The notes below the pieces were generated by a model that saw only the letters and a program-made list of their open reading frames with translations, searched no databases and was not told the origin of the DNA. Positions 2,357 to 61,536 of a stretch of DNA of 64,000 bases are shown one piece after another; the stretch's first letter is position 1; each line of letters opens with the position of its first letter. Made by a program: the position numbers and the translations under genes. Origin of the DNA: Phallusia mammillata. Lineage: Eukaryota. Where the stretch lies: positions 7,874,001 to 7,938,000 of the forward strand of contig OZ281494.1 in the NCBI GenBank assembly GCA_965637545.1, given 5' to 3'.

Positions 2357-5300
2357 ATGTCTAGATCTTGCATCAACAATCTTCGTCGAACTGCTATTCT
2401 TCTTTTTGGTCTTTTTTTCCTAAAGGTAAGCAGACTAAACCTTCATTTAACAAAGGTTACTGTGCACAAGTACACGTTAAAAATAGTTTCGTCTTGTTAA
2501 TGCTTAACCCTAGCATTAGGTTTTTCGTATACTATATGATCATACAGAAACTGGTCTATTAATGTGTCTATTAAACTATTGACTTAGCCTAATTCTATTC
2601 GCACATACTGCAACTAAGTTTTGCGTCTTAAGGTTAATTCGTTAAGTAAACTATTTATTCTTTCCAGGTTACTGCAGCTGATCACAACTCTGCGGTGAAA
2701 AATCACTTCACCAATCCCTGTTCCCATCTGGGTGACGAACTGACACGATATTTAGCTGAAGATGATGATGGGATTTTGTGTTGTTTATGTCCTGAGAACT
2801 TTTACTATCATTCAGCCTGCAAGTAAGGATATTAAACCATACGAAACTCGATACCCTTGTTGCATTTTAAAGACGTAATTGCCCGTTGGTTGCAGAAATC
2901 GTGAGTTCAACACCACGGTTTGTTTGCCGTGCCCTGAAGGAACCGAAAGGAAATTTTCCACTGAAGTTCAAGGGTTAGAAATGTGCAAGCCGATTCCTAC
3001 CACAATACCCAAATCGACCACTCCACAGCCACAAAAAATGTAAGCGGTGGCAATTCAAACTCCCTTTAACGCATTTTAGGACAATTATGTTTCCTTTTCT
3101 TTGGGGACACATATTGCTTTTGTCCGTATATTTTTTTCTTTTTTCCATCTAACGCTGGGTTGTTTCACGCGTTTGGTCAGGGGATTGCTTTAACGTATTA
3201 AAATTTACACACATGTTAGGTATTATCCAAATTTGATCCTCCTAAAGTTTGACCATGACTGAACCAGCGGTTCACCCACTAACCCCCAATACTTATTTAA
3301 AAAAAACGCCTGTACTGACTAAAGTACATAATCTAGCAGTTTTATGTTTTGTTGGTTGGTGCAGTATAAGTAGTCTAAAGTATTTTGTAACCAGGGAGTC
3401 GAACCGGAACTGAACCCAAAACCGCGAACCGGTTTGAGCGGTTAATTTCATTAAACCCGAACCGAACCCGAACCGCCAATTACGATTTTCTAAAAACCCG
3501 AACCGGAGTTGAACCCTATTTTTTGTTTGGCGTTGGACCCGAACCGGAACCAGTAAAAATGCAGTCTGTTATATAATTTATACGAGAGATGACACTTATA
3601 GGGCGTGTCAAAAATAACAGTGCGCAGTCAATATTATTTTGGAGTTTGGTAAGGCCAAGTAGATAATGGGTAGAATTAAATTGAAACGAATGAAAATTTG
3701 AACTGGTTTAAAAACCGCTAACCGGTTCGAACCGGATAATTTGCCGAAACCGGAACAAAACTCAAATATACATTTTTAAAGACCTGAACAGAACCCGAAC
3801 CCTTAAAAACAAAACCAAGTAAACGCGAACCAAACCTGAACCCATTTGACAAGCGGTTCGACTCCCTGGTTGTAACTTTTAGTTAGATTCACCCATTTTT
3901 ACCCCTTACCCAGAAATATTCGTTTTTAGGTTTGCCAAGACCTTATGTGCAAAAATGCAAGACCTAATGTGCTGAAATTGTAAACAATTGTTTGTAGTGT
4001 GTTTTTAGTTTAGTATTTAAAAATTTAGCCTGATCGGTCTCGTAGTTACCTTTACAGCCCCGAATATGTAAACCTTCAGGTACTGCAGTACAGAAATCCC
4101 ACGGTAGTGAATCAACGGCGTCCGATTGCGGCGGTTTAATTTAGAATGGGAGGTTTCTGTTTGCTTCACGAATGGTCAGAGGTTTTAATAGGCTTGTTCC
4201 GGTAATTAGAAATCAGGTGTTTAGCGCAGCAATGCTATATGGTTCATTTGGTTAGCATGCGCAACTTTAGTGTAGCGAAGGTTTCATACTCGATAAACGG
4301 AACTTCGCTTTGTAACTTATGTTTCTTAACATAAAAGTCAAAAAAATAACTGGAAGAAAGCCACGGTAAACGGTCATTGTCAGCTTGACCGCTGCATGAC
4401 GAGAAGTCACAAGGTCGATTTGTTGGTGTGGCAAAACCCTGCAGAAACGATTTTTTGTCACAATGTAACTATTATAACTAAATGTAACTGTTTTAGACAA
4501 ATAAATTCGAGAAACAATACGTGTTTTGTATAAAATAGGCAAAATGTTATTGCTGAACACCAAGGACTGCCTGTATGGAAACATGTGTCAAAAGGTCGTT
4601 AAAGGTCAAAAATATCGCACCATTTTTATAGCGTAACCAATTCCCATTAACGTGTCTGTTGGGACCCATTCGTCTTTGCCTGCAAATACAATTATGTGTG
4701 CAGTTCAAACGGTGCGTAGTAAATCGGTAAATAGGATATAGAATATATAAAACGGAAAAATATAGAAAAGCCACTTTTTTAGTTTTATCCTAAAAAAGCC
4801 AACCGGGTATATTTTGCGCTATTGATAACTCCAAATGTACAGTTTTTCCGTTTTTTTGTTTAATTACATTATTAGATCCTTTAAGAAATATTAGCAAAGA
4901 CCGAAAGTTGCCAACAGTAATCAACATTCCTAATAATACTTTTTGGTTACAGAATTTCAACTGACGAACAAGATGGAAAAGACGAAACCGGAGAAAGTAA
5001 ACAACCAGAAAACAGCGTTCCAGGTATAGCTTCAATCCGTCTCGGGAACCAGCAAATGCTTTGTTTGTTATTAGTCTGACTTTAAAAATCCTTGTATTTC
5101 TTACAGGATTGATAATTGGGTTGTTGGTTGCGGTAGTAGGGATGTTGGTGATGTTTGGGTTGGTGGTTTGGTGTGTCACACAAAAACCGAATGTTGTTTC
5201 CTGCTCTGGGGTGAAGGTACAGGATAATTTGTTTTTAAGTAATAAATCACCAAACTGATTTTAAACTCGCTTTGCTAACAGAAAACCATTCCGGATGTCG

Positions 5301-6855
5301 AAGCGGGAGTTGATATGTCCAGCTCATCAGTTACAACTGGGTAAGAAGCTTAAACTAAGCGCAAGTTCTACAACATACTGTTATCATCGCTTTATTTCTT
5401 TTCCAGACACTCATCACAAACTCCAGTGAGCAACAGGCGTGATTCGATTGCGTCAACCACAAGGTTTGTAACCTTATAAGATTTTTTGTCTTAAAGCTTT
5501 GTTGATTTTAAATTTTTTGTTTTTTTAGTGCACCCCAGGAGAACCCAACAAGGAAATACGAGGTAAGGTTTTATCTTTCGTTTGACCTTTGACATACATT
5601 TTTGCAATCAGCCACCATTCCGCTATGATTAAAAAAAATCAGATTAAAAAAATAATAATAACCGCTGTCATCTTGGCGTTGTCGTTTCTCAAAGTATTTA
5701 CAGAGGGTGAAAGCTCACGTTTCTTCAGAACATTTGAGGCTTATGTTATTTAGGTTGAATTATTAAACTATGCGTCACTTTTTGCAGCAAAAACGTTTCA
5801 TAAAGTTCGATCTATTTTGCAGGTGCAATACACGCAATGTCCCACAAACGACCCTGACGTCGTCATAACCGAAAAGGGGGTTACTAACGACGGTCAAGCA
5901 ACACCAGAAAAAGTTAAAGCCATTCCACTAAGAACCGACTACCGAGAATCGAGAACAATTAGCGAAAATCCTACGGCTCCCCGGGTACAACAACCTGTCT
6001 ATAATACAGACGACAGGTTAGGAACACTACCTGAAACGAGCACAGGTCTTCCAGTAATCCGTGGTTACAACATCAACCGAAATGCGAACAGTAAGTAACT
6101 CGATTCGGTCGTATTTTGTCTCTTATAGTAAGTGTATGATCCATGTGTCTCTTGTTTATATAACTAGATCGAAGATCTCTGTAAATAGACTGGTGTAGCA
6201 TAAACTATAAAAACGTAAAATGGCCGCGTTGGCTCCAAAAATACAACATTTATGGTTTGAAAATCGTAATCAAAATTGATAATAATGCAACAAAATTTTT
6301 AGAATTCTCTGTTTTAGTTTCTTATCTGCATCTATTTTTTTTTTTACTTTTTAGTTCAAACGATTTTAAACGTATTCTTTTCCATTGGGACAACCCTTGA
6401 TGTTCCAATTACTGCATTTCAAGTCGAAGGTTTTGGCTATCGTTTCGGTCTGGTCGATGATCAAATTTGTACAGCGAAAAAAAATTCCGGTAAGTGTCAA
6501 AACAACCATTCATGATTTTATAAAACATTTAAGTGAAGTCTTCTGCCTATCGTTGTAAGGATGAGCCATATATAACTCAAGTTAACAATGTTGCTGCAAA
6601 CCTAGCATAAACCAACCAATGGGTATTGAATTATAGTCTAGTAAAGTAATTACTAAACACTACCCAACGCCGGGACTGACTTTTAATTCCTATTTTTTGT
6701 TAGTTACAGAGGGCAATGCCGCGTTTTTGTGCAAAGTTTTCAAACAAATAGTGAGCAAGAAGGGCATCCATCTTGATCTGAACGAAGTGGTAAACTTCTT
6801 CGAAGACAGTGGAATGGGACTGATTTACGATCATCTCGTCCAACAATTGGGGTGA
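2357..6855 (+). CDS. g1: TNF-receptor-like type I membrane protein with C-terminal death-domain-like region (~415 aa, 11 coding exons)
   Basis: Exons 2357-2425, 2668-2822, 2896-3039, 4953-5023, 5107-5216, 5282-5340, 5407-5463, 5529-5562, 5823-6090, 6355-6489, 6710-6855. All introns GT-AG, phases chain, total 1248 nt. Signal MSRSCINNLRRTAILLFGLFFLK; CRD NPCSHL..CCLCPENFYYHSAC|..FNTTVCLPCPEGT..C; TM GLIIGLLVAVVGMLVMFGLVVWCV; DD-like tail ..FLCKVFKQIVSKKGIHLDLNEVVNFFEDSGMGLIYDHL. Confidence 0.85.
3392..3868. mobile_element. hAT-type MITE in g1 intron 3
   Basis: 15-bp TIR CAGGGAGTCGAACCG / CGGTTCGACTCCCTG; 7/8 TSD TTTGTAAC / GTTGTAAC; many subterminal GAACCG/GAACCC motifs. Confidence 0.85.
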
Positions 6856-8861: not shown

Positions 8862-11463
8862 ATGATGTCCATTTCCCACTTCAGAGTTCAACATTGGTGG
8901 CTGCTAATTTTCCTCATGTGTATGGTAAAGGTAAGATTTTGCTATCATGAACAAATTTGTAAAACCTGATTTGTAAGGAACTTTTGGAAACTGAAATTAA
9001 TCAACTGCGATAAATTATCTCGGATAATTTTTTTTACTGGAAACAATGGTTCCTGGTAAAAGAACTAGGTTTAAAAGTTAACAAAAAAAATTAATAGCGG
9101 TATTAGAAGCAAAAAGTAAGTCACAGCCTTATTGGGGAAAGGGGATCAATATATTATTTAAAACACCCAAAAGCAACAAAAAAACAGAAATCCAAAATAA
9201 GCGGAACAAGTTCCCCTTAAGAAAGGTAGCTGTTACACAAAGCCCATAAGGACAGTTACACAAAGCCCATTGCCCCTTTTTCTTGTTTCTTCATTACCTC
9301 GCGATATACTGAACTTCACCTGAGCATGGAAATTTTGACTCGTTCGATTGATTTTCTTTAGTCGTCTTGCAATGCTGTCGAAGATGAACAGACGGTTGTG
9401 CCAACTAAGCCTCCTGGCTTCTCAACTGGCAGTGAAAAGAAACAAGACGCGCCTGATATTTCGACAACACAACAACCAACTCAATCACCCATCCATTGTG
9501 GTCAGCTTTTTTGGACTAATAATAAATCTGCTGTTATCGTTATAGTGGTGACTCTGAATATATGTTGTTCAGTATCACAGAAAAGGCAAGATGACAAAAT
9601 AAAACTGGAGCTCATACCAATTGGTTTCCTAGTTGCAATCATTATCTGTGCACTAGCGTTTATCATTGACACAAAATCTCAAAAGATTGAACCGGTAAGG
9701 AATTATTTTTATGTTCTCAAAGCCAGAATCGTAACCTCATGTCTAAAACGATTTTTTTCAAAGACATTTTGTTGTGATAATTCAATCAGTGTCGATCTGT
9801 AAATGAACTTCCTTTGATGTATAGGCCAACATCACACCGAACATTCCAGTACTGGACAATTCAACACTGAGCACATCGTTTCAGGGGTAAGTAAATGATA
9901 TCGCGAAGAAAAACCTTGCTTCAAACTAGTCAAACCACAATCAATGGCATTGCCAACCACAAATTGTAAAAGTTGGATTATCACTACTTGCTGAAGATAG
10001 TTCCATTTTATACAGTCAAAAACTGTTGGTTTTGCACAATGTTTCTTATGTTAATGGAGCCTAAAAAGTTTCTTATATTAAACAAGCCGCATTTCATAAT
10101 ATCCAAAAAGGATGAGTATCCAACCGAGTGAGATAATTTGCTGAACAATGATTCAAAATTGCTGACAAAAAAGTGAATTTCTTTACTAGACTTAAGTGTA
10201 GAGACCCTTTAATGCGTTTGGAAAGCTTCCCGCAGAACGCTCACCAGCACCCAGGGTGAAAGCCCATGGGTCTTGCAGGAGTTTTTCTAAGCGCTCAATA
10301 ATATATCGAATAGCAACATAACTTCTGATTTTATATTGCTTTGTTATACAGACCAAAACTTCAACCAGAAAGCGATGTTGACTATATATCAGCGGCACAG
10401 GACAATTTCACATCGGAGAATCCCATCAACGAAGAAGCAAGGACCAAACAAAGCCCAGTGGCAACAGTAACAGAAGGGCTGGGTTTCGACAAAGTTGAAG
10501 CCATTGGTGATGCAGAGTTTCCGGCAACAATTCGAGAACCAGGCCCACCAGAAAAAGTTATAGTTAAACAAAGTCGTGCAGAGGCAACAAACAATGGCCA
10601 GGCACCAGAGAGTGACACAGAGAGAAATCGAAAACGTAAGATTTTGATATTTTTTTTAGTGGATGTAAAATACATAGCTGTGGGTATTAAGCATAAAGTG
10701 AACTTCGTTCGGTTTGGCAAAATAAATTCGACCGGTTTTGACCACCGAGCCTTGCAACAGACTTTAAAATACCTTTCAATCCAAAAACAACAGAATGGGA
10801 GTAGTAATGTGTGGATGTATTTGAATCATGATGTTTTTTGCATGGTTTGCAATACAAAGTAGGATCTATTGTACAGTGTGCTAGGGTTGTTTTTTTCCAG
10901 GCAACTAATGTTAAAAACTTTGTTTAACAGTTGACAAAGCGGAAGGTATTTTGCTTCATCTAATGAGCATATCTGTGACGCCCATTAATGTAATGCAGCT
11001 GGCAGCTCACTTCCAAGTTTCGCTGATAAATCGCCAAAAATTGGAAAGAATCTTCGAAAAAGGTATTCTAACAGTTGTCAAACAAAACAAATGCCTATCG
11101 CGTAGTGAACAAACTGCCAATGCACCATGTACATTTCAACAAACCGTAAGCTTGAATATCCGATACGTTAAGCATAAGAAAAACATCGCCGTAACTATCT
11201 TTTATACCTTTACAATTTACATAGTGGTGCGTATATCAAAGCCTTAAGAATGTATGCAAATGCTTTATAAAGCAAGTAAAATACATAAAGGTTACATTTT
11301 ACGTACAGATCCAAATAGTGACATTCTAGTGTACCTTACGAAAGTCCTGAGGGCAATCCGTTCATCGCATGAGGACTTCAATGTTGAAATGCTGATTGAA
11401 TATTGGAAATCCAACAATATGCGTCCACTTGCGTCGCATTTGGAAGAACAAATGGGATGTTAA
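8862..11463 (+). CDS. g2: CRD-less paralog (signal, short mucin-like ectodomain, TM, death-domain-like; ~320 aa, 7 exons)
   Basis: Exons 8862-8930, 9362-9500, 9573-9694, 9825-9886, 10352-10635, 10931-11062 (132 nt), 11309-11463; 963 nt in frame. Signal MMSISHFRVQHWWLLIFLMCMVK; TM LIPIGFLVAIIICALAFII; DD-like VMQLAAHFQVS..FNVEMLIEYWKSNNMRPLASHLEEQMGC. No CRD exon seen in intron 8931-9361. Confidence 0.85.
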
Positions 11464-16295: not shown

Positions 16296-19200
16296 ATGCT
16301 TTTTGCAAGATTGTTATTAGTCTTGCTTTTACTATCCTGCTTTGCACAGGTAAGAAAACAATTCTAAAGTTTTTTTATGAAACGTTTCGAAACTGCATTA
16401 TCTACATACACAAAAACAAGATTCTAATTCAGTAAACCACATTTGTATGTTTATCTAAATAAAACATAGTAATGCTCTGTACTGTGTTGTTTCACAACAT
16501 TTTTTTTCTAAACCGCCCAATATTGTAAAAACTTAACAACAGGGGCAGTTGGGACAGTTTGTTTACACTTGAATTAAATTGTATGTGGTCATTGAGTCGA
16601 CCATTTTTTTCTGTTCACATGATCGATAAAGATTGAACAGTTGGTTAATTCGATGTTCTTATTACTTTAGGGTACGTTGGGGGTCAATAAAGATGTGAAA
16701 AATGCAGCCATAACCGACCCTTGTCCCCATCTTCTCACCAGTGGGGTGCGGCCATTATTGGAATTTTTTGACAAAACAGGACAATCTATGAAATGTTGTG
16801 GATGTCCCAAGGATCATTTTGTTCTAAAGCCATGCAGGTAGGTTTGCTACCAACATTGGAACATTTTTCTAATGAAATAATCAAAACAGTTAGTGTGAAG
16901 TGACAAAACGGATTTAATGTCATTTTCGTAATCCTACTACCGTACCAGCTAGTCTTAATTTGACATAGCATACACTAGAGTTCACGTTTGTTATTCCTAA
17001 GGATGATAAATAAAAACCATGCTGTTTTCAGTGACGGATTCATTTCTGAATGCCGGTCATGTCCTCCTGGAACGGAGTTGAATAAAACTGTACATGGCAG
17101 TGGACTAGAAGGATGTACACAAATCCCAACAACAGTGCCACCGGAAGAAATTTCCGATGATCAAAGGTAAGTTTCGCAATCGTCGAAGTAGCGCACAACC
17201 TTTTTGTTATTGTCCATGTTCACTGAGTTCAAACAAAAGGTCTACTGGCATGTATGTTGAGCCCCTGGCAGCATGTAATAACTCCGGTACCTTGTTGAAA
17301 CAAACGGCCTTCATAAACCGTTTTGCCCGCCGATAATGAAACATAATCAAACAAACGTTTTACCTTCTATCACCAACATGACAACGTAGCTTATCGAAAT
17401 AGTTGCATTCACTATTGCACCTGACAATAACAGTTATAAGTAACAAATAAGTAACAAACATCGCATCTATATGATACAGAAACAATGATCTAGAAAAAGA
17501 TGATGACAGAACTCAACCACCACAAACAGGTCAGGTCGATTCCAAACCTCCAGGTAAGTTATTTGTTTTTGTTAACCATAACCATATATCACCTATTTCA
17601 TCATGGCTAAAACTTATCCGTTTTTACAGAGAAAGACAAAATCACTAAAGAAAGTTTCACACACCCCGGATATTACTTTTTGGCTGGAGTCTTGCTAAGC
17701 AGTGTTGCTCTTGTTGCTGTTATTTACAAGCGAAATGTCCGGTCAGGTCCCATACAGGTAGTGCATGGCGATACAACTCAAAATGTTTATAGAATAAGCA
17801 CTAAATCTGCTGTATTACAGAAAGATGAAACTGAGATTTGGTCACCAAACCAAACACGCTTAATGTAAGTTAAAAAACAAACAAACACTTGTGTGCGACG
17901 GAGTTGCGACTTACTTAGCTATAAGTCCTTATAAACCGTTGGTTTTTCTCTCGTTTTATGTTAAAATCTGTTAAACCTGCGACTACGTGAGCTAAATTTA
18001 ACTGACGTGCTTTCCAAAACTAATCTCTACGCTGTGTTTAATATAATTTACACGCAAAGGAACTGGAGAGAAGACAACACTGTCAGCGTTGGATCTGAAG
18101 CGGACGGTCAAAATTTCGAACTACAGCTCGAAGACGAAACAACCCCAGCTTTGGGGTAAGTAATCGTCACGCGATACATAATAGGTCATGTAGAACGACG
18201 ACAGTTTTTTATGAAAATAAAACTCTGCACAACTCCGTCTAGTTTCGTGGTGAGCCAGACACCCATAAAAGTTAAAAGAAAAACAAAAGCTCGGGTGTTA
18301 AACCAAATGGTGTGGTTAAAGTTGCGATGTTCTTTTAGCCCAGACCAACCGTTTTCCCCCTATTTTTCATATATCATATTTTTTTCATATAGGGAAATAC
18401 ACGAGCTTAACTTAACTTCCGTGCTTTTCAAAACCGACTTATTTACAATCATATTAACTACGTTCAATTCATTTGCAGAGCAAGGAGCTCGAGAGAAGGC
18501 GTTAATGGTAGCGTTGGGTTCGAAGCGGACGCTATAAATTCAGATGAGGCGGTCCTAGATATGAGGTATAAAGCGTAGTAAACGCCATGCGATACTTACT
18601 ACGTCATGCCTTTCCATATACCATAGTTTTGACTTTAAAGCACGTTTAAAACAGTTTCAACATAGGCACAAACTTGCATAACCATTCACTTACTATCCAG
18701 TAAAAGTGGTCTAACACTACAACAGTAATGAAACCGTGCAAATTTTTAAATATTAATCCTAATTATACAATGTTAAATTTTATTTTCAAATATAAAACAG
18801 CGAAGACGAGGAACCTGAAGCAACCAAAGAGAAACTTCACACAAAAAATGTGAAGAATGATGATGAAGATGCAACCGTTCTATCTACAACACACGAAGAG
18901 CCGGAAAACCCTAAAGATAAAGCTACTCCCGATGGGGACCCATCGGCTGTTATCCGCGAACCACCAGTAAGACCATCAGTGAGCAATTCCGATGATCTGG
19001 CTGAAGACGGGCCTACGGTTGAAGGACAGGTGCCACAGCCGATACAACAAAGGGGTGTTGCATCTGCTAGTAACATGGTAGGAAGTGCAAGCCGGATTGA
19101 GCATGGTGGTGGTGGTGCTAATACCGGCCCACCCATTCAAAACATGACTCGAAACGCAAGAGGAGTGGAAATTGAAAGACGTAAGTTTAATTTTTTGCCT

Positions 19201-19978
19201 ATTGTTTCCACTGAAAAGAAACCAATTTAATGATGGAGTAAAAGAATAAATTATTTTGTCTGCTGCAAATTATCTTCTAAAAATGGACAGTTTTTACGTA
19301 CAATCAAAACAACACAGCGATAACCAAAATTTTTGTCACTCCAAAAAAAAAATGGAAGTGTACAAACGTTTCAATACGAAAAAACAGATTCCAAATTTTG
19401 GGAGCTGCTAACACTGATAACTGCATATAGTTATTTGTAGCAAATGATATTTTATATGCTCGAACTATAATGTTCAGAAACAGCAACAAAGAAAACTTGT
19501 CAACGGCTTTTATATTATTGGCACCATAAATTTAAAAACTTGTGCCTAACAGGTAACTGTTTGACAGAAACATATTTCATGAACCATATGTTTTTAGTTA
19601 TGCAACTCGAGGACCTCGTGATACATTCAAAAACGACTCCGGTATCCCAAAATGACTCGGTTAAGGTCCTAAGTCATTTTCAAGTGCCAGAAAACATCAA
19701 GAAGACGTTGGCAAATGAGTACAAAAATGGTACGTGGTTTGTCCGTAGATCGATTTTTTTACTTACTTGAATGAAGGTTGAAAATGAATGTCGAAGACTG
19801 ACAGCAGATCTTTCATACAGACAACGATCCCTTGACGTACCTCTACAAGGCTCTAAAAGAAATTCGCAAAAACTCGTCCGACATTACAGTCGAAATACTC
19901 ATCTCATACTGGATGAAGAACGGAATGAGAGAGATGGCCACATATGTGGCTGGCGAGATGGGTATCACTGCCATTTAA
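16296..19978 (+). CDS. g3: TNFR-like death-domain receptor (~484 aa, 11 exons)
   Basis: Exons 16296-16349, 16671-16837, 17032-17166, 17480-17553, 17630-17757, 17821-17864, 18060-18155, 18479-18565, 18801-19180, 19598-19729 (132 nt), 19821-19978; 1455 nt in frame. Signal MLFARLLLVLLLLSCFAQ; CRD DPCPHL..KCCGCPKDHFVLKPC|..ECRSCPPGT..H..C; DD-like ..ITVEILISYWMKNGMREMATYVAGEMG. Confidence 0.88.
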
Positions 19979-32059: not shown

Positions 32060-32545
32060 AATATACATCTGCACCACCTTGATATGGGGTGACAGAAAAA
32101 AAACGAAACAAAAAGGCCACTTATGTAAAAAAATAACAGTTAAACCTGTAAACTTCAGGCGAAACTACGTCGGAAAGCATGTGCCAAATGATGTCACATT
32201 TACTAACATCTGCACCACCAAAGAATGGGGGTGACAAAAAAAAACAAAACAGCCACTTATGTTTAGTGCGCCAAAAATAATTGTTAAACCTCTAAGTTCA
32301 GGTCAAACTTCTTCGAAAAACATGTGTCAAATGATGTCACATTTACAGATACTTCTGCACCACCTAGATAAGGGGTGACAGAAATCTACAAAAAAGCCAC
32401 TTATGTTTAGTGCGCCAAAAATAATTGCAAACCTGTAGAAGGCAGGTGAAGCAAAGAAAAAGTTATGTGTCAAGTTGAGACACGTTTCTACTAACTTACA
32501 TCTGCACCACGTAAAAAGGGGGTGACAGAAATCTACAAAAAAGCG
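32060..32545. repeat. Degenerate tandem repeat, ~3.5 x 141-147 bp, downstream of g4
   Basis: CTGCACCAC...GGGGTGACA motif starting at 32069, 32210, 32355 and 32502. Confidence 0.9.
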
Positions 32546-43700: not shown

Positions 43701-43930
43701 TTTACAAAACTTTATTATCTACAAAAGTTACTATACATGTTAAAACAGGAGATATCATTCAGCATTTTGTGGGCATTGTAACCTCTGTGCACAACCGGGA
43801 TGGAAATCAATTTACAGCCAAAATATTCATTGAAAAGCTGAAGGGTGCAGAGTTGCTTTTGTTAGCAGAAACAATTGAACAAGAAATGGAAAATCATAGT
43901 CCGCCCGACATGTCAGATGGACAGAAATAA
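40730..43930 (+). CDS. g6: TNFR-like death-domain receptor with an extra duplicated half-CRD exon (~386-426 aa)
   Basis: Exons 40730-40771, 40838-40983, 41177-41314, [41424-41543], 41671-41741, 41808-41947, 42165-42235, 42311-42549, 42928-43059 (132 nt), 43749-43930; in frame with or without the bracketed exon. CRD DPCKHL..QCCGCPPGFYLHTVC|..FNSTVCKKCKNGTFIDEKAHDKRNC. Confidence 0.86.
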
Positions 43931-46328: not shown

Positions 46329-47748
46329 AAAGTTTAATTATTCCCACCTTGACCTACAAAGTCAATGTTGTACCTACCGAATTACCAGAAGCTTTCGTCA
46401 AAAACCTTAAAATAATTTTCTTTAAGTTCATTTGGAACTCAAAATGGGAAAAAGTTAAACGAGCAAAGCTCTGTTGTAATATTGAGGATGGGGGAATCAA
46501 TATGTTTGACCTGGACGCATATCTGGTGTCATTAGATATCAAATGGGTCAATCGATTATTTAACAATTCGTATGCATCTCCATGGAAAGATCTCGAAACC
46601 TCGGTCGGGAGCCCCAGCGAATTCAACTCGTGGTTAAACAGCAGTGTGTCTCCCAACTCAAAACTCTTCCTTCAATCAATCCCCTTACGAACATTAAGAA
46701 AGGCAGTCTCGGCCTGCAAAACATTCGCAAAACTTACAAATCTCCCCGCTAATGTTTATAGACCCCTTTGGTTAAATAAAGAAGTCCGATCACGCCTAAA
46801 ACCCTTTTACATGCGACATCTAATTCGCGCTGGTATTTTCAGTCACCTTGATCTACTTAACAATGATGGTGATTACTATACATACGACGAACTTGCCCTC
46901 AAATTTAACTTTCAGCCAACAAATCAAGATTTCACCTATTTTATCAAATTAGTCGCCGCAATCCCAGACAATTGGGATCTAAACGACCGACAAACTAACA
47001 GAGTACCCCCTGAAACTAAACCATCTTGGTTGCATACCATAGCCCTGCGCGGCACAGTTAAAGAAACTTACAACTTCGTAAAAGATCACACATCAGAACC
47101 GCCAACACAAGAACAGAAAAAGTGGGAAACCGACATAGGGGTTAGTACAGAAAAGCCCAACTGGGGGGAGGTGTACAGGAACACGTATAACTGTACCTTA
47201 GAAACAAACTTAAGAGCATTTCAAATCAAATTAAACTTAAGAGCGGTAATAACAAACAATAAACTATACAATTTTGGCATAGTAACTTCAGAAAAGTGCG
47301 TTTTCTGCCAAAGTTTCCCTGAAACCATTTCTCATTTGTTTTACACTTGCAAAGTCGTCGCCCAATATTGGGAAAATGTTACTTCTTGGATCTCCCGCAA
47401 ACTATTATTGAATATTAAACCGAATGTAGCGTTATGTTTATTTGGAACTCATTTGTACAGTTCTGTTACACCATTGTTAAATTGCATTTTTCTATGTGCC
47501 CGGTTTGTAATATACCAATGTAAATGTATGTGCACAAAACAAACCTACTGTGAACAGATTTATTAACGCATTAAAACTAACGAAACAGTCCGAACTAATT
47601 ATTGCTACTAAAAGAAAAAAACGTGCAGAGTGCTTAGTCAAGTGGTCTGGCCTCTAATTGCCGTTAAATACTTAGCGTTTGTCTGTTTGTTCTGTTGTAC
47701 TTTAATGTATCTGTCTTTCTTCGTGTCTTAGTTATCGCAATAAAAAAA
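46329..47748 (+). mobile_element. 5'-truncated non-LTR retrotransposon (L1/Tx1-like), 3' part of ORF2
   Basis: Translation SLIIPTLTY..FIWNSK..GGI..W..L; zinc knuckle CVFC..ETISHLFYTC; one frameshift near 47540, then KPTVNRF..ELIIATKRKK..KWSGL* ending 47657. AATAAA at 47739 plus A-tail; 15-bp TSD AGTCGAGATTTAGGG at 46314-46328 and 47749-47763. Confidence 0.92.
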
Positions 47749-48030: not shown

Positions 48031-51000
48031 ATGTTGCTCATACAATTTTTGGTACTTTGGTTATCAATTATGGTAAGTTTAAATGTGATTTATAACTTAC
48101 AACAAGGTTTTCTTACATTTTATTTCATGCAGGATGTCAATCTTGAAGATATTCCAGATCCTTGCATGCATTTGGAGGCTCGTGAAAATGACCGCAAACT
48201 TGTTGAAATGTGTGGGAATGAAGGCCTGAGACACTGCTGTGGATGCCCTCCAGGGTTTTATCTGCAAACTGTCTGCGAGTAAGAAAAAGTTCAAAGCACC
48301 AAGTTTACAGGGATACTTAAAATAAAGCTCTTGGACATTATTGTGTTTTTGACACTTTATATATCTAAGTATGGAGTAAACTAGAAGACCAGTAAAACTC
48401 GGTTGGCCTAAACTTAACGAGCCAGTCAATAAACAAATAAAAGGAAAAAATTCTTCATTCTCAGTTATTTGTGGCCATGCTGTCTGTTGGAGGGTCTGAT
48501 ACCGTTCAAAATAATAACTATCAATAACCTAATAAACAGCCTAAAAACTTTCTGTATGTAATGTGTTGTATAAAACTTAGTACTTTTGCAGGATAGGGGT
48601 TTTTAATTCAACTGTTTGTGTGAAATGTAAAGATGGAACTTATATTGATGAAAAAGCCCATGATAAAAGGGAATGCATCACTCTTCCAAGCAAACCAATC
48701 ACCACACAAGCTCCATCCCCAACAGAAACGTACAGAAGTTTTGGGTGGTTTGTTGTAAAGCAACACAAAATTACAACTAATTTGTTTGATACATTTCTAC
48801 TTGAAAGATATCTCCATGAGGAAAGTAAATATAAAATTGTACTTTTTCTTACAGGTCTTCCCAGCCTTGCAACACAGAAACAATGCATGTTGACAGTAAT
48901 ACTTTATGTGGCACAGATTGGACAACCACCTTTGTGTGTAAGCCTTTTAAATTACAAGTTACAGCAGCACTTAGTTTAGAGCCTGCTCTTGTTCCAGATG
49001 GACTTCTCGCTGGCATTCCACTTGGTATGATACTTGGAATGTCATTACTATTGTTGATTATACAATATGGAAAGAAAAACAATACCAAATGGAAAGACAT
49101 TTTCCCTTGCTCCTGTCAAAAGGTTTGTTCATCCGTTTTTGCATGTTGATTGACAACCATTTTAGAGCGTCTTGGTCATCATGTTTGACAGTAACTTCAG
49201 TTTTTAAAGCCTGTTTTCATCGCCAGTTTAAGTAATTGAATCATTTATTAAAATTGTCCACTTAAGGTGGGACCGTTTAACATGTAACAAGCTATATATA
49301 ACATTCTAATCATTTCACTATGGTTAACTGTGTTTAAGTATCTTAAAGATTTATGACTTTTGATTTTGATGTCAACTATTTATGTGTTAGGATCAAAAAG
49401 TGCAACAACCCAGTGTTCATAAATTGCAAGACATGAACCCCCCAAATAATGAAGATGACAGGTACATTACACAAACAAATTCAGACAACTGGTCAAAGTA
49501 GGTTATGGTACTGTTTTGTGAACTCTTTTAAACAACAGCTAATAAGATTCTATTCTGATAACTAAAGCATGGATTTAATGATTAATTACTTGTAGACAAG
49601 CACCAAGCACACATCAGGTAGATACACAATCATCATCAAAATCACCAAATGGAACTCAAAATTCTAACCTACAAAAAAAGGGAAACACCCAAAATACTGC
49701 AAATAATACTACTGTATCAGTAACAATAGAAAATCATCTTGCCGAGGATAACCTATCACAACCAGGTGATACTCAGCCGAATACTAATGTCCCAACAACA
49801 CAATATGCAAGTGGCTCACAATTGACTGGACATATTGAAAATGAAAGTAGGTTACAAATGATGGAGAATACAGGAGTTGATGAGGAAAATGCACCACTGC
49901 TAAATGGAACTCAACAGAACAGCAATGGATCAACAACGCAGAAAAATACTCAGAATGCAAGTAACTCACAACTGCCCGAACATACTCAAAATGGAAGTAG
50001 TGTGCAAGTGAGAAAAAGTATAGAAGTTAATGAGGAAAATGAACCACTACTAAATGGAACTCAACAGAACAGCAATGGATCAACAACACAGGAAAATACT
50101 CAAAATGCAAGTAGCCCAAATTTGCCCAAACAAGATCAAAATGGAAGTAGCTTACAAATAAGAAAAAATGCAAAAGTCACTGAGGAAAATCTACCCTCAC
50201 CACATGAAACTCAGCAGAATACCAATGGCCTAACAGCAAAGAATGCAAGTGGCTCACAAATGCTGGAACATGCTCAGAACGGAAGTAGCGTACAAATGAG
50301 GCAAAGTACAGAAGTTGATGAGAAAAATGCACCACTTCTAAATGAAACTCAGCAGAATACCAGTGGCTCAACAACACAGGGTGCAAGTGGCTCACAAATG
50401 CCCGAACATGCTCAGAATGGAAGTAGCTTACAAATGAGGGAAAGTACAGAAGTTGATGAGGAAAATGTACCACTACTAGATGAAAGTCAGCAGAATGCTA
50501 ATGGCCCAACAACACAGGAAAATACTCAGAATGCAGGTAGCTCACAACTGCCTGAACAAACTCGAAATGGAAGTAGCTTACAAATGCCCACATATGCTCA
50601 GAATGCAAGTAGCGTACAAGTGAGGGAAAGTACAGAAGTTGATGAGGAAAATGTACCACTTCTAAATGGAAGTCGGCAGAATACTAGTGCCTCAACAACA
50701 CAGGATGCAAGTAGCTCACAATTGCCCGAACATACTCAAAATGTCACTGAGGAAAATGTACCACTACTACATGGAACTCAAAAGAACAGCAATGGATCAA
50801 CAACACAGGAACATACTCAGAATGCCAGTAGCTCACCATTGCCTGAACATGCTCAAAATGGAAGTAGCTTACAAACGAGAGAAAATATGGAAGTCGCTGA
50901 AGAAAATCTACTCTTACCACATGAAACTCAGCAGAATACCAATGCCCTAACAGCACAGAAAACAAGTGGCTCACAAATGCCCGAACATGCTCAGAACAGA

Positions 51001-53314
51001 AGTAGTGGACAAATGAGGCAAAATACAGAAGTTGATGAGAAAAATGTACCACTACTAGATGAAAGTCATCAGAATACCAGTGGCTCAACAACACAGGAAA
51101 ATACCCAGAATGCAGGTAGCTCACAATTGCCCGAACAAACTCAAAATAGAAGTAGCTTACAAATGGGGAAAAGTACACAAGTTGATGAGGAAAATGTACC
51201 ACACGAAATTCAACAGAATACTAATAACTTTACAATGCAAGATTCCCAAAATACAAGTACCTCACAAATAGAGGAAAATACTGTCATTGTTCAAAACATA
51301 TCCCCTACCCAGCTTGAGGTCGCACCTTCAAACGAAACTGTAGCGAAAGAACCTGTTTCCAAAACTATCACCAAGGATGTTTTTTCGACGAAAAATTGTG
51401 AAATTTCTATGGGTAAGTTGACAAAACAGGGTGTACTTTTAAACATCCACTGCAAGGTCAAACTGTGTCTAACTGTGCACAGTCTAAAAAACAATATATT
51501 ATAACACATAGGAAAACTAATGTTTTTTTCGACAAAAGCACACAAGCATATGTGTAAGTCTATTAATTAAAGTATCTTCCTTCATTGTGATTATTGATGT
51601 AATAAACAAAACTGACATTGTTTCATAAAAACAATTGCAAATAAGTAAATTGGGTTAAAAGTTGGCCTAGATTTCAAATTAGAAAACAGCACCAAGGATA
51701 TTTTAAAGAAAAAAAAATTAACAAAATCTCAATTGTGTCCTGTTTTTTTAGTGAAAAACGTTCTGACAAGTATTCCACAAAAACATAAAAGTATTTTCCT
51801 TGAACAAAAGCATGCTGATGCTCTAGCTAGAAATCTGGACATATCAGAGATTGATTGTGCAAATTTACGCAGAAAAAATGAAGGTAAGCATTTTGAGTAC
51901 ATTGTTTCTTTTAAATCTCTACTTCAAATGCATTATTTTGGATTATAAAGCTGATACTTGTTGGTACATTGTAAATACTGTACACTGTGAATAACCTGTA
52001 CAATTATACCCAATTACAATTGGTGAAAAGTAAACCTACACCTGAGCTGTCATGAGATGCACATAGTATTTATACGAACAAAGAGTTGCTAAAACAAATT
52101 GTTTCTGGAAAAAAATAGGGCAGGTGATATGTCATGACTCCTTTAGGTGCAAAAAAGTGTTTAAAAACGTTTGTTTTATTTCGTATGAAAATTTTATTTT
52201 TCCATCATCCTTATTTTGGGGTCCATGTCGATGGCAACCATGATTATAGAACAGGGACATTCAAATACTGCAAATTTTGCTAAGTGTCGCCTGTGAACAT
52301 TTTCTGCATGCGATGTTTGACTCACATTGCATAAACAATGGATTCTGTTTAATAAAGATAAGTTATACATCTTCAAGTGCAGGTCAATAGGTAACCAGTA
52401 AGGGTTAACAATGCCAGTTCATCTTAATTAGTGATGGGACGATACCAGGTTATGAAGCGAGTACCGATACCGAGTACGAGTACCACATGTATATACCTTC
52501 GATACCGAGTACCGAGTACGATTACCGAGTACTTAAGTGTAGTGTTGTACTTAGTTGTATATCACTGGCTAATTTTTTTGCCGTGGTCGGGGTGCAGGCG
52601 TGCACACACACATGCCGAAAAATGTAATCTCCACATGATAGCGAAAATGATATACGTAACCTGGCGGAACCTTTTTCCTGATTTTGTGCTGTCCGAAGCA
52701 AATATAGGCCAAAAGTTGCCCGTATTCTTATGGTGTAAATCGGCCTTCGGTACTCGCACGTTGGTATCGAAAACTGAGACAAAATATTTCGATACCGAGT
52801 ACGAGTATCGATACCACTGAAATCGCTCGATACCATCGATACCGATTACCGAGTACCCGTCCCATCACTAATCTTAATGGCAACATGAATATGCAGAGTT
52901 GCAAAGACTAAAATTTAGTTGTCAGTAACAGAGTGTTTGCAGATGTAAACCTAAGAAACACTATTTTGGTGGCAAAACACTAAATCGTTTAGATTAGTAA
53001 CTGCAGTCTTTAGTAAAGGGATTTCTTCCTTTTTTCACCCTGCCAAGTACTTTTTAAACATCTATTTGACCCTTAATGACGCCAGTTTTTGGGCCACTAT
53101 GTGACACTTCTATACCAGTGTACTAAACATATACAACTTTTATAAAAAAACAGAAAACATCATTCAACATTTTGTGGAGATTGTGACATTTGTTCATAAC
53201 CGAGATGGAAATCAATTTACAGCCAAAATATTCCTTGACAAACTGAAGGATGCAGAGCTGCTTTTGTTATCAGAAACAATTGAAGAAGAATTAAAAAGTC
53301 AGCTGCCTAAGTAA
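48031..53314 (+). CDS. g7: TNFR-like death-domain receptor with ~600-aa repetitive cytoplasmic linker, closest paralog of g6 (~904 aa, 9 exons)
   Basis: Exons 48031-48072, 48133-48278, 48592-48729, 48855-48937, 48998-49122, 49391-49461, 49596-51412, 51752-51883 (132 nt), 53154-53314; 2715 nt in frame. CRD DPCMHL..HCCGCPPGFYLQTVC|..FNSTVCVKCKDGTY..HDKREC; TM LLAGIPLGMILGMSLLLLIIQY. The 560-aa ORF-track hit 49822-51504 is the repeat exon. Confidence 0.86.
49840..51290 (+). repeat. Coding tandem repeat, 10 units of ~45-50 aa (~135-150 bp), in the g7 cytoplasmic exon
   Basis: Recurring EV(D/N/T)E(E/K)N(A/V)PLL..QQN..GSTTQ..QNAS.SQ(L/M)PEH.QNGSS(L/V)Q; indels keep the reading frame. Confidence 0.95.
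52429..52870. mobile_element. hAT MITE (TAGTGATG-type TIR) in the last intron of g7
   Basis: TIR TAGTGATGGGACG / CGTCCCATCACTA; perfect TSD ATCTTAAT; dense GTACCGA/TACCGAG subterminal repeats. Confidence 0.93.
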
Positions 53315-55634: not shown

Positions 55635-55839
55635 GTTTAGGTAAACAAGGCGTCTAGTTGCACTGCGGCAAGCTAACTAGTTGCACCATTGGCAAATATT
55701 ACGAGTTAACGGCAGAAATACATCCAGGTTATTATAAGGGGACAACAAACAGGTAGGTCCCCTCTAAGATATATATTTTCAGCATTACTGATGAAAACAA
55801 ACTTCTGGCAGACATATGTTAAGGTACAATTAACGTTTG

Positions 55840-58800
55840 ATGATGTTGATGTTTCTGCTTTTCGGCTTGACATTGGGACATCCTTTAAAGGCAAGTTTAA
55901 ATGTTGTTTGAGTAACTACGGTTGATGTTGTTTGAGTAAATTACGGTTTACAAGGTTTTCCAACGTGTCATGTACAGTCAAACGTAAAACAACCGTTATT
56001 GTAACAAACCTAATTGCTGTTTTAAAGTTATTTTGAACTCTAACGTCAATTGTATTGCAAAAGGTTGTCTTTGCTTCTTCACACGACAGTGTAAAGGTAA
56101 ACGGTTTCCTTTACGTTTGATGCAGACTCACATTGTTGACCCATGTCCCCACTTGGAAGTAAAAGGTTCTGGAAGAAAACTGGTTGAAATGGGTGAGAAT
56201 GGATTTGAACATCACTGCTGCGGTTGTTCGGCCGGGTTTAGGCTGGTCTTAAGTTGCGTGTAAGTTGTACAATGGTAAATATTAACTAGAAGTTTCGTCG
56301 TTAAGGTTAAGCGAGATCAAACCTGTTAGAAAGGCAAACACCTGAAAAGTTTCTGAAGAGTGTTAGTAGGTACTGACGTTAAGTACAAACAAGATGATGC
56401 TGTTTGCGTGAGAAAATCATTTAAAACACAAAACAAAGAACAGCAGCTTTTGTTCATGCTACAAAATGTTGTAATTCGGGTCGAGTCAGGCCAAAATGGC
56501 TTGAAACTTAAACACCATTTGTATCAAGTTTTTCGAAACTTGTCCACTAAAGTAAATTTAAAACAGTGGTTCTTAACCGGCTGAAGAATTCCGTAGGGGT
56601 TCGGCGGTGATAAAAAGGTTAAGAACCGCCGATTTAAAACGATGAAAGTGATTTGGCAGCAAGTTATTTTGTTAAAACTGCGACTAAACGTCAAAGAACA
56701 GAGAATTGTAGTTGTTGTTTCACCTCAAATATCAATTATCATACAGACCGCTAAAGTTTAATACAACGGAATGTGAACCGTGTGCAAAGGGAACGTATAT
56801 CTTCGAGGAATCTCACAATAAAAGAAAATGCGAGGTTGATACACGACCGACGACAACCGAAGAACCCACTTCACCAAAAACCACCAAATATACTGATACC
56901 ACTACCGTTACATCAACCGTGGTGACAACAACCTACCACACAAAACTTTTAAGGTATATGCTAAACATGATTGTGTATTTCTCTTTGCCTAGATCACAGG
57001 TGGGGACCTGCGGCCGAAAGGCCACATGCGGCCTTTAGGTTCACAAGGAGCGATTTCTGTGGGCCTACCAAGAGCTCGTGGCTCTCAAAAACTCTCAACA
57101 ATCTTACTTGTGTAACAAAGAAAACAGTTGTTTGCGCATAATGTAATGTTTAAGACTTGTCTGCAATGTCACAAGCTTCCCTCAGATATGTATAAACAAG
57201 CACATCTACAAGTGAAATAAATGTTGTAGTGAAGGTGGAAATGTAGTGGGAAGTTTATTTACCTTTATTCATCATAGGCCGTAATTACCACGACTGCAAG
57301 AGAAAATTACACAACGGACATTCCGTAAATCAAAAAGTTTAAACACCACTCTCCTAGGCCTGGAAAATAGTCTATGCGGCCTACACGAGTGTCGATTAAA
57401 CGTTGAGTGGCCTTTATGAACAAAAAGGTTCCCCACCCTTGGCCTAGATTATTCTCCCATGAACTTGCTCCGTGCACAATTTTTGGTCCGAAAGTTTGTG
57501 TTCCATCCGGTGATGAATTAGAAACATTGATGGGTTATCAGGTTTTTCAGAGAAAAGGTAGAAAAATAATCATCGTTCTAACATGTTTAACATTGTCTCG
57601 AGCATTCAATAAAATAAATAACAGAATTCAAAAGATTCCAAAACAGTAATTTATGATTTTCTACAATACGATTCGCGCACATGAAGTCCGTACAAATATG
57701 TGACCACGGTGTGTCCTTTGAAATAGGCTATGCGTTTTGTTAAAGACATTTTTTCGGAAAGTGAACTACATTTTAGGTAGAATTTCGGTACAGGCTGGAG
57801 CAACTTGCGACATTTAATTACTTGTTCAACAAATAAGACAGTGAAATCCCTACAGATGATTTGACTATAACATAGTGAAAAAAGCTTTACCGAAATAAAA
57901 AGATAACTCGAGCACAAACTTTGTCTTAGGCCAACAAAACAACCTAGAGTCCAACACAGGGGAGTACAACCACTCACATTTGCGACGCCACAAAGCACGT
58001 CCAAGGAAGGTAAGGGAACATAAACAAACAAACAATAATGGTACAGAGAGCTTTTTACACGTTTTTTTAAGATTAAAGTAGGACAAAAGTGAATTTAACT
58101 TGATTGCATGTCTGTGATTTGTTGGTCGTATTTCTGACAACTGTTTATCACGTACAGGTGACCCATACGCAGTAGTTGTTGCGATGATCTCCTTGGTATC
58201 CATAATATGTTTAGCCCTAATGGTTCTCGTCATCCTGCTGTACAAACGAAACAAAGAGTTACAGGTATCTCAAAAACGTTTTTCCGTTCTCGCAAATGTA
58301 GCAAATCGAGCCTGTACCTTTTTACTGTATGGTGATGCATTGTGTGTAATCTTGGACACCAAGCATTCACATATATGACAAGGCATAGGCTAGAAAAAAT
58401 CTAGCCTACGGTGGAATTCGTACCCAGCACGACAGGATCCTATCCCCGATTTGTGAATTTATGTTCATCTTAACATATTTAAAAGGAAAACGTTTGTAAC
58501 AATGCGTTTTGCTGGCACAGAACAAACGCAACCGGGCTCCTGCCGCCACATACACGGCGGACCAAAATACACCTTTAAAATCACCATTAGCAGCCAGCGA
58601 TGCAGAGATTCAAGAGAGCGAATTTGGTAGCACGGAATCCTCCAAATATCGAGGCAAAACTGTGGTGGAAGACCAAGGGTTAGTTTTGGTATAATTCTAA
58701 AACATTTTTGTCTATTATAGAAAACTATAAAACATGCATACGGTATATGATAGATCATATGATACATTGGGTTTACCATTAACAGCAAAGTGTTCAAAAT

Positions 58801-61536
58801 CAACGACACATGCAATAGGCGTATCGTGATATGCGATACGTGGCAGTATGGTGATTGGCGAACCATTTAAATACGTCATGTTCGAAAGCTACATTTTTTA
58901 CAAGGAACAATAGAAAAAAAATAATTATAACTTCCGTTTTTTTTAAAATAACTCTGTTGCCTGATCATGTCAAGTAAGATTGATTTTTGAGCTATCCCAG
59001 ACGTGTCACTTAAAATATTGTAGCTCTACAACGACAAGCCAGAGCAAGTTTACAAAATAGATAAGGTGTTCGATTTTCAGAACTCGCCCCATGTTAATGG
59101 TAATATCAGTGCATTTTTTTACATTTGTATTTGCCTCAACACCGTATTTGTGAAAATCATTTTCGGTAAATGAGAAAATGTTGAATAATCTGCATTTGAT
59201 TTTATCACCCCTATAAATATAAATTGCAGTTTGTTTTATCACATGTATTGCTTTACAGTGCGACTTCGCAGCCTTTACTACATTCTAGGAACAACTCAAA
59301 CGGCTTAAGGTACTTTCGGAGATCATCATCACCGCTTTTTAGACGCCTCTAATATGTTCCTTTGTCTTTCAGAATCGACATAGTAAAGGCACAAAAAGGC
59401 TTTGTAATGGACGAGGTAGGCAATTATTTTAACCAAAATGCTTTGAAAAACCCCAATAGCAAAGAAGACTAAAACTCAACCAAATCTATGACATCCGAAC
59501 CTAGATTTTCCTTCAAAAGTTAACCTTACTTATAAAATACTACGAATGTGACTGAGTATAGTAACCAAATCACATGGTAGAGTGTTCAATATTTGACAAA
59601 ACTTTAAAAGTATTGGTCGGCGCTGCACAAACGCAAATCATTAAAAAAATGTCCAAAATTGAATATTTATCGACAAAAAAGTATCTCAGTAACTAGCGAG
59701 TGTAACCACTACCATCCAAAATATTGATAAATCAACTGCAAACTCCACCACTGCTATTTTTCGAAGAGTGGTTACTGCCTTACAAAACAATGTACAACAT
59801 CCGTCCCAAATATCGAACGAAAATAGTTGTTACCGCTAATGGTGGAAATATATCACCATATCAAAATAACGTGAACTTGCATACAGCTTATGTAGTTTAA
59901 ATGAAACACGATTTCTTTACAGCAACAAGAGAGTACTGCAAAGTTTTTAAGTCCTGGAGAAGAGGAACACACAACCGAGCCCGTGTCACCGGTTAGTGAA
60001 CAAGAAGAACCTACTGAGTCCGATGAAACAAAGACCAAACGTGAAATTCACATCGATGCAGAACCGCGATGTTCAAGCCACTACTATGCCGACAGTACGG
60101 ACATCCACCAAACCAACGAACAAGAATACTCAGCGCAGAGTAAGTAGAGCAAAAAAGAAGCAATAATTCCACTAAAAAGTTTGCCGGATCATGGGAAACA
60201 GCGCTGGCGTTCCAGTTTTCAGCGAGTTTCAAGTTTTGACCAGCAGAACCTGCGGGTTCAACAACCGTTTCAAGCAACTGGCCGCACCCCGTTAGATTTG
60301 AGCGGTCGGTTGCGAACCTAAATTTAAATACCAGGGCACTTAGGTCAATAACCCATGTCTTTTGGGGTCCTTGCTGTTGAACGAAATTGTTAAAAATGAC
60401 AAATTTGATGCAGAGGCATTACAAACAAATTGACTTGATTTGAGTTCCAGCAACTAACCAATGTTCTAGTTAATTCATCGGGTTAAAAATCAATTTGGGT
60501 TCGTACGATGCCGAAAAAATAACAGTAAACACGTAAAAAACGTCGTTCAGCGATGTAAACAAAAAAGCAATAATAGTACCGGATTTGATGTAGACATCCT
60601 ATACTATAGTTTAGAATACAAAGGTGAACGATCTTATGTTTAGGAAAATTACAAGTTAAACCGTATACTAATACAAACGCACACTTACTAGTAGAACTTG
60701 ATTTTGTGCAGTGGCGATTATAAAAGACTTCTTTTCCAATCTTACAATTCTACAACCTGATGTGGTTTTTAACGACGACATGGTGATGCAATTTGGCCGC
60801 AACTTTAATGTGGGAGAATATATGTTGACGCAGCTGAGGAATAATAAAAGTAAGTCATGAAAAAATCATGTCATAAATAGTACTAACAGATATGCTATAT
60901 GTTGGTTTGTAAACAATGTTTAAAGTAGGTATATTCAACCAGAGTTGTAAGTCGAGCTGGGTTCGAGCTCAGTTTTTTTAAGAAACGGGCTTGATTCGGA
61001 CCTGACTTCAAATTCTGTGTCCGTACTTTTTCAGACAAACTTACCCAGCTAAGTAGCTAGTTGGTAGACTTAATCAAATGCCCAACAGTGCTCAAACGCC
61101 GTGTTTATTTATATGCTATACATTAGTGGCCCTTTTTTGAGCTTAAATGTACAGGCAGGTTAATCAAACTTTCGGGCCTGAACGGCCGTCTCAAAAACGA
61201 TTCGCTTTGGACCGACCTTGTATTTTAAGGTTAGGGCGTGGTTTAGACTTCGAGCAGCTTATAACTCTGTGTTAAACAGAACTATTCATTAAATGTTAGG
61301 ATCAGATTAAAAAATATATCACCCATAAAGGAGAATGAAACTTTGTTCTGTTTTTTTTGTAAGGTTCAACAGGCGAATTTCTTATTCAAACATTTCTTCA
61401 AATTCGCAACATAAAAGGAAGTGCTTTGAAGTCAACCGACATCGTATCTTATTTCAAACAAAATCACCACGTCCTGCTTGCCCAGGAGTTGGAAACTAAA
61501 CTGTCAGAAACACAGAAAATAAAAACAAACAACTAA
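55840..61536 (+). CDS. g8: TNFR-like death-domain receptor (~452-463 aa); first intron GC-AG
   Basis: Exons 55840-55890, [56064-56096], 56126-56259, 56747-56953, 57930-58009, 58158-58264, 58521-58678, 59259-59309, 59373-59415, 59923-60139, 60712-60849, 61364-61536; phases chain. Signal MMLMFLLFGLTLGHPLK; CRD DPCPHL..HCCGCSAGFRLVLSC|..FNTTECEPCAKGTY..H..C; TM YAVVVAMISLVSIICLALMVLVILLY. The two small linker exons near 59.3 kb are less certain. Confidence 0.8.
56564..56631. mobile_element. 68-bp minimal hAT element
   Basis: CAGTGGTTCTTAACC / GGTTAAGAACCGCCG; perfect TSD ATTTAAAA. Confidence 0.85.
56995..57441. mobile_element. hAT/Charlie MITE in a g8 intron
   Basis: CACAGGTGGGGACCT / AGGTTCCCCACCCTTG; perfect TSD GCCTAGAT. 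Confidence 0.88.
60940..61269. mobile_element. hAT-type MITE in the last intron of g8
   Basis: TIR CAGAGTTGTAAG / CTTATAACTCTG; 6/8 TSD TATTCAAC / TGTTAAAC. Confidence 0.7.

Follow-up and report, generated by a model that had tools for sequence, protein, structure and literature searches.

The window analysed here, a 64,000-nucleotide stretch of DNA from the tunicate Phallusia mammillata, carries eight paralogous genes (g1 to g8), all on the plus strand, in an array that spans positions 2357-61536, from the ATG of g1 to the stop codon of g8. The array comprises six genes for receptors like those of the TNF receptor (TNFR) family and two genes, g2 and g5, for death-domain (DD) proteins that lack a TNFR-type cysteine-rich domain (CRD). 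Most likely, these are eight expressed or expressible genes for type I membrane receptors that belong to one divergent tunicate-lineage family and are built like the vertebrate death receptors. The locus is read here as a divergent tunicate-lineage death-receptor variant that standard annotation has missed, and it is relevant to the reports that ascidians have no DD-bearing TNFRs.

With an AT-rich composition (GC 33-39%), exons that are short and an absence of long open reading frames (ORFs), the window looks like typical animal DNA, and the near-perfect mapping of three public P. mammillata protein records marks it as ascidian. All-against-all comparison of stop-to-stop translations brought out plus strand exon families that recur every 5-10 kb. 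Hidden Markov models (HMMs) of these exons detected eight DD2, six CRD-a and seven CRD-b exons (two of the CRD-b exons lie in g6). Seed copies scored at E 1e-13 to 1e-43, with weaker scores for the g1 DD2 exon and the second CRD-b exon of g6, and the models found no comparable exons elsewhere in the window on either strand. One phase skeleton is common to the eight genes: a signal exon (0), CRD-a (0-2), CRD-b (2-2), stalk (2-1), transmembrane (TM) exon (1-0), linker, DD1 (1-1) and DD2. All eight DD1 exons have AG/GT borders and phase 1-1, and the coding region of the death domain is interrupted by an identical phase-1 intron in every gene. Each of the eight final models opens with ATG and runs without an internal stop to its stop codon, and all of their introns are GT-AG. 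A preliminary description of this DNA had proposed a tight tandem cluster of eight plus strand genes on a single exon-phase skeleton, each model reaching its stop in frame. The exon HMMs and gene models bear this out, and the DD1 lengths given there (135 nt in g1, 132 nt in g2-g7 and 138 nt in g8) were exactly reproduced. The first exon is hydrophobic and signal-like in every gene, weakly supported in g8. Genes g2, g4, g5 and g8 each have a single strong TM candidate, and the protein records for g1, g3 and g6 show an evident TM segment followed by Lys/Arg. Type I topology, i.e. a signal, one TM segment and a cytoplasmic tail, is read from this hydrophobicity of the exons.

How firm are the gene models? 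The 11 GT-AG exons of g3 reproduce the nr record CAB3262824.1 (P0001) with one amino-acid mismatch. The 11 exons of g1, every junction GT-AG, encode a protein 95.9% identical to P0010 (nr/UniRef, 418 aa, P. mammillata), and the ten exons of g6 match CAB3262864.1 (P0002) at 99.8% identity plus a 5-aa indel. The public records differ from the assembly by substitutions or indels and are therefore independent of it, which supports the junctions of these three genes. A further record, P0004 (CAB3262825.1), has a matching architecture and is only 59% identical to g1 over its whole length; it thus represents a ninth family member outside the window, and its gene would lie elsewhere or just past the left edge. 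Models were built with two purpose-written programs, one for spliced alignment and one that finds exon chains ab initio; the chain finder was run on g2, g4, g5, g7 and g8 with the conserved exons and each gene's sole strong TM exon forced. With g3 excluded from its training, it found 10 of that gene's 11 known exons. Because a low intron penalty led the aligner to place spurious micro-exons in the diverged linkers, the penalty was raised and combined with the ab initio chain after validation of the latter on g3. For g2, g4, g5, g7 and g8 the linker exons come from ab initio prediction or paralogue guidance and are uncertain, and word-based protein searches returned no public record for these five genes.

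The C-terminal domain is recognizable at the level of its predicted fold. The last 107 residues of g3, modelled with AlphaFold2 from a 15-row family alignment, form six helices with a predicted local distance difference test (pLDDT) score of 92.6. VIA-align, a scan independent of Foldseek, compared it with 48,161 PDB chains and placed the FADD death domain at the top (Z 11.7 and 11.6), with the death domains of ankyrin-G (9.8), p84 (9.6) and RIPK1 (8.9), a TNFR1-DD complex (8.7) and the Fas death domain (8.6) next. The top 50 are nearly all death-fold proteins and the best CARD scores Z 8.8; the g3 tail is a six-helix antiparallel bundle nearer to DD than to CARD, DED or PYD. Foldseek searches of the PDB, Swiss-Prot models and AFDB clusters gave the death domains of FADD, Fas, DR4 and IRAK2 at TM-scores of 0.62-0.69, as well as AFDB clusters labelled 'Death domain-containing protein' (TM-score 0.6-0.7). 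A family sequence profile run against PDB sequences pointed weakly to the death domains of Fas (E 0.27) and TRADD (E 0.7-0.9), and a DD2-exon profile found no match there. A C-terminal six-helix death-domain fold is thus predicted in all eight genes, the fold that the preliminary description had expected: by its own structural model in g3 and by alignment in the others.

A similar picture emerges from the ectodomain of g3. Every one of its top 50 Foldseek matches in the PDB is a TNFRSF-type ectodomain (one is the viral homologue UL144), with E-values starting at 5e-3, a probability of 1.0 and 28-32% identity across some 60 columns; DR6, DcR3, HVEM, CD40 and TNFR1 are included, and CD27 is also among the TNFR-superfamily structural matches. 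In the VIA-align scan only 24 of the 48,161 chains reached Z >= 2. The top 17 are all TNFR-type, two of them viral (UL144 and CrmE), with Z 3.6-6.2 and DR6 first at 6.2. The fold in this moderate-confidence model is that of a TNFR-type CRD, an elongated disulfide ladder of beta-hairpins. A sequence profile of the ectodomain gave weak matches to DcR3 (E 0.016) and HVEM (E 0.1). Eight cysteines are invariant across the four full-length records, and their pattern, CC-x-C-P...C...C-x-x-C-x-x-G-T...C, resembles a single canonical TNFR CRD after an extra cysteine pair, or about 1.5 CRDs. The CRD-TM-DD reading is supported by the models at the fold level, although neither Pfam model recognizes the proteins. 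The death-receptor layout that had been ascribed to all eight genes therefore stands in part: it agrees with the fold in g3 and with alignment for the rest, but a TNFR-type ectodomain is carried by six of the eight, g2 and g5 being without one.

Several results weigh against reading the array as death receptors. Pfam TNFR_c6 (PF00020) reached only E 0.41 on P0001 (11.5 bits against a cutoff of 29.4) and had no match in P0002, P0004 or single exons. Pfam Death (PF00531) gave no match at E <= 1 in P0001, P0002 or P0004, and Pfam searches of single exons yielded nothing significant. Searches with these two models, which the preliminary description had suggested, gave no significant match. The g3 ectodomain model has a mean pLDDT of 59.7 (about 70-78 in its core), every Foldseek E-value for the death domain is above 0.1, and g3 is the only member that was folded, the other seven being assigned by alignment. 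Genes g2 and g5 keep the signal-like exon, TM segment and DD and have no CRD. Support for the proposed junctions is divided: independent protein records back those of g1, g3 and g6, but no transcript record was found for the other five, and their models are open and phase-compatible without transcript support.

Could the cysteine-rich module have an origin outside the TNFR family? The genes would then encode DD membrane proteins with a convergent or shuffled disulfide module of the ephrin-receptor-like, ELAPOR or GCC2_GCC3 type, and their ligands would be other than those of the TNF family, e.g. microbial or self surface molecules. Weak Pfam matches to Ephrin_rec_like (E 0.042) and TNFR_ELAPOR1_6th (E 0.0013-0.03) outscore TNFR_c6, and the small size of the ectodomain and the moderate confidence of its model point in the same direction, as does the presence of ELAPOR1 and taste-receptor cysteine-rich regions in the VIA-align list. 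The non-TNFR matches in that list, however, score Z 2.4-2.9, below all 17 of the TNFR-type ectodomains. With an unbroken run of TNFR-type structures at the top of the Foldseek results, and with DcR3 and HVEM first in the sequence profile, such an origin is considered unlikely.

More improbable still is the notion that some copies are decaying or non-functional, and that their open frames are artefacts of picking splice chains. The copies in question would be g2 and g5 for their lack of a CRD, g8 for the weak donor of its first exon and g7 for its runaway repeat. The five genes without a public protein match would fit this notion, as would linker exons selected ab initio; the signal exon of g8 is the sole hydrophobic start-codon candidate found there, and its phase-0 donors are poor. 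Every gene, however, keeps an intact phase 1-0 TM exon, its DD1 and DD2 exons are free of stops and have good splice sites, and the ab initio method performed well on g3 when that gene was left out of training. The giant exon of g7 is a 1.8-kb open frame, and the ratio of non-synonymous to synonymous substitution rates (dN/dS) is below 0.5 in the domains of g4 and g7. The interpretation of the array as eight receptor genes of one family is thus preferred, and the coordinates of the models are given in Table 1.

Table 1. Gene models of the array, with positions in the window (empty cells: no position reported)
Gene	Span	Strand	Model and basis	Signal	CRD-a	CRD-b	Other exons	TM	DD1	DD2
g1	2357-6855	+	11 exons, 417 aa; P0010 spliced alignment	2357-2425	2668-2822	2896-3039		5107-5216	6355-6489	6704-6855
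g2	8862-11463	+	7-exon model, 320 aa; ab initio chain, TM and DD1 forced	8862-8930			Thr/Pro/Gln-rich stalk 9362-9500	9573-9694	10931-11062	11309-11463
g3	16296-19978	+	11 exons, 484 aa; CAB3262824.1 alignment	16296-16349	16671-16837	17032-17166		17630-17757	19598-19729	19821-19978
g4	26163-31566	+	10-exon model, 473 aa; P0001-guided spliced alignment and ab initio chain		26331-26491	26668-26802		29629-29750	31059-31190	31409-31566
g5	35984-38806	+	8-exon model, 373 aa; ab initio chain, TM and DD1 forced	35984-36058			two Cys-poor ectodomain exons	37384-37499	38298-38429	38634-38806
g6	40730-43930	+	10 exons, 428 aa; CAB3262864.1 alignment		40838-40983	41177-41314	CRD-b' 41424-41543	41808-41947	42928-43059	43749-43930
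g7	48031-53314	+	8-exon model, 928 aa; P0002-guided alignment and splice-site listing	48031-48072	48133-48278	48592-48729	71-nt exon 49391-49461; giant repeat exon 49596-51412	48855-49134 (fused stalk and TM)	51752-51883	53154-53314
g8	55840-61536	+	9-exon model, 415 aa; linker exons ab initio only	55840-55902 (tentative)	56126-56259	56747-56953 (with Thr-rich extension)	stalk 57930-58009	58158-58264	60712-60849	61364-61536

Four members depart from the common architecture. The CRD HMMs found no cysteine-rich exons in g2 or g5, and no CRD remnant was seen by eye upstream of g2; the 5' exons of both genes are models unverified by records. In g6 the additional exon CRD-b' is a diverged duplicate without the second Cys of the CxxC pair; it is present in the public record P0002 and, to judge by its sequence, is an internal exon duplication. 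The giant exon of g7 (1,817 nt) remains open throughout and consists of about ten tandem units of 138-150 nt (alternatively, five of 288 nt). The encoded repeats are rich in Asn, Gln, Ser and Thr, and each has an acidic stretch and then Pro-Leu-Leu. This acidic and Pro-Leu-Leu motif resembles an acidic dileucine sorting signal.

How did the array diversify? The death domains of g3 and g4, which is the closest paralogue of g3, are 62% identical, as are those of g6 and g7; g2 is 31-33% identical to g3 and g4, and all other comparisons give 8-28%. The strong divergence claimed in the preliminary description is thereby confirmed, with 8-33% identity between subgroups. Its statement that pseudogenes are lacking also holds, as the exon HMMs detected no relic in the window. 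A possible DD2 relic at 21838-21927 was rejected as a 17-aa low-complexity match. Of the birth-and-death evolution proposed there, the 'birth' is borne out, but death is undemonstrated because no dead copies are seen. The downstream flanks of g3 and g4 are homologous on the plus strand (20340-21323 and 31758-32796), with several blocks of translated similarity. The duplication unit therefore reached at least 1 kb past the stop codon, and the homology fits a tandem segmental duplication.

Is there selection for different recognition and signalling specificities, as had been supposed? By the NG86 method, dN/dS in the CRD exons is 0.30 (g3/g4) and 0.22 (g6/g7), with no non-synonymous excess, and the supposition is unsupported. 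Values for the death domain are 0.37 (g3/g4) and 0.40 (g6/g7), and those for the stalk/TM and linker parts 0.5-0.6. These figures come from two young pairs only and are averages, not site-wise, at a dS of 0.5-1.2, which is near saturation and limits the test. The pattern is one of average purifying selection, and with a dN/dS of 0.2-0.4 in CRD and DD the copies are therefore argued to be functional.

Differences between the assembly and the public records are unevenly distributed. Gene g1 differs from P0010 by 17 residues and one indel (4%), concentrated in the stalk and TM exons, but g3 and g6 differ from their own records by 0.2%. This contrast suggests that allelic polymorphism is unequal across the array, and the figure for g1 could reflect a high level of it. 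Between g6 and g7, at 46349-47566 on the plus strand, lies a 405-aa ORF with Pfam zf-RVT, the reverse transcriptase zinc-binding region (E 3.5e-8). This ORF probably derives from the 3' part of a non-LTR (long terminal repeat) retrotransposon that inserted in the intergenic spacer.

Relatives in the databases are few. An exhaustive HMMER search with the DD2 profile, covering 1.84 billion representative proteins, yielded no more than five credible relatives: three P. mammillata proteins, P0004 among them, and two short metagenome-contig fragments; four further matches were discarded as repetitive helix-turn-helix- or kinase-like proteins. Word-indexed protein searches with P0001, P0004 and a four-protein profile returned only the queries themselves and P0010. 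The records of g1, g3 and P0004 are named 'uncharacterized protein LOC100183792', and that of g6 carries the name LOC100184291. Both are Ciona gene names, and Ciona homologues therefore probably exist. No literature on either was found by name, and all named records are 'uncharacterized', in keeping with the idea that these are not already described receptors. The metagenome contig k141_431470 (L001), which also occurs as L002-L004 in a total of four metagenome or sequencing-run assemblies, is eukaryote-like with a GC of 38%. At L001:9098-10159 it has a DD1-like exon (9098-9241) and a DD2-like exon (9992-10159), with the intron position as in the array; no recognizable CRD or TM was found upstream of these exons.

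How might the array function? A trimeric TNF-superfamily ligand would cluster the receptors via their CRD ectodomains, and the clustered death domains might recruit a DD adaptor, e.g. the ascidian FADD-like protein, which would feed caspase-8/10-like or NF-kB-type signalling. Extrinsic-type apoptosis operates in ascidian tail regression, and ascidians possess FADD-like and caspase-8/10-like genes. Without a CRD, g2 and g5 could serve through TM and DD as partners or modulators that need no ligand, in the way that NRADD relates to p75NTR, and g7 would contribute a repeat-built tether of about 600 aa. The array may have grown by repeated tandem duplication, its old members diverging almost to the limit of sequence recognition. 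The immune, cell-death or self/non-self roles suggested in the preliminary description are purely conjectural. A broader proposal, offered tentatively and rated less probable than not, is that the family and its Ciona homologues are the missing DD-bearing TNF receptors of ascidians. In this sister group of the vertebrates they would be where the FADD/caspase-8-type extrinsic pathway is physiologically entered. Within Phallusia the family would have split into receptors with CRDs, modulators without them (g2 and g5) and one member on a long tether of repeats (g7), perhaps alongside the tandem expansion of tunicate TNFSF ligands. The array would supply concrete candidate upstream receptors for ascidian extrinsic apoptosis. 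Its natural variants, i.e. the CRD-less copies, the duplicated CRD exon and the giant repeat linker, suit the study of how ectodomain and linker affect DD signalling. The locus also illustrates how the rapid evolution of tunicate proteins conceals known architectures from sequence models.

Closest among known systems are the vertebrate death receptors (TNFR1, Fas, DR4/DR5, DR3, DR6, EDAR and p75NTR), which share the type I topology, a TNFR-type ectodomain, a single TM segment and a C-terminal DD. Structurally, the array ectodomain is best matched by DR6, DcR3 and HVEM, and the tail by the death domains of FADD, RIPK1, TNFR1 and Fas. The array differs in having about 1.5 CRDs (eight Cys) where the vertebrate receptors have 2-4, in sequences too diverged for Pfam TNFR_c6 or Death, in long disordered acidic or Ser/Thr-rich linkers from TM to DD, and in forming one tight cluster of at least eight copies. 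NRADD is a p75NTR-like death-domain protein without CRDs. Genes g2 and g5 have a like reduced layout, with a signal-like start, a short Cys-poor ectodomain, TM and DD, beside CRD-bearing paralogues; the likeness is architectural only and involves the unverified 5' exons of the two models.

Lineage-specific expansions of TNFR-type genes offer a second comparison. There are 36 TNFRSF genes in B. floridae and 40 in Acropora (PMC12843592; PMC4979521, Table 1), and the amphioxus and cnidarian expansions resemble the array as large lineage-specific multiplications of TNFR-type genes in invertebrates, some with death domains. The Phallusia array, in contrast, is tunicate, escapes standard domain models and has six to eight members in one 60-kb array. 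In Ciona, three TNFRs are listed, none with a DD (PMC4979521, Table 1), and three TNFr, four TNF and a FADD-like gene are cited elsewhere (PMC10923776). Tunicates have up to 14 tandemly duplicated TNFSF ligands per species, in a study where receptors and Phallusia were not treated (PMC12843592, 2026). The naming of Phallusia records after Ciona intestinalis LOC100183792 and LOC100184291 implies Ciona homologues, as a comparison of names and not of sequences, and the sharing of one Ciona name by several Phallusia genes suggests that the family expanded along the Phallusia lineage. The ascidian inventory of three TNFRs and no DD receptor would change with a family of nine or more members that combine TNFR fold and death fold and are invisible to Pfam.

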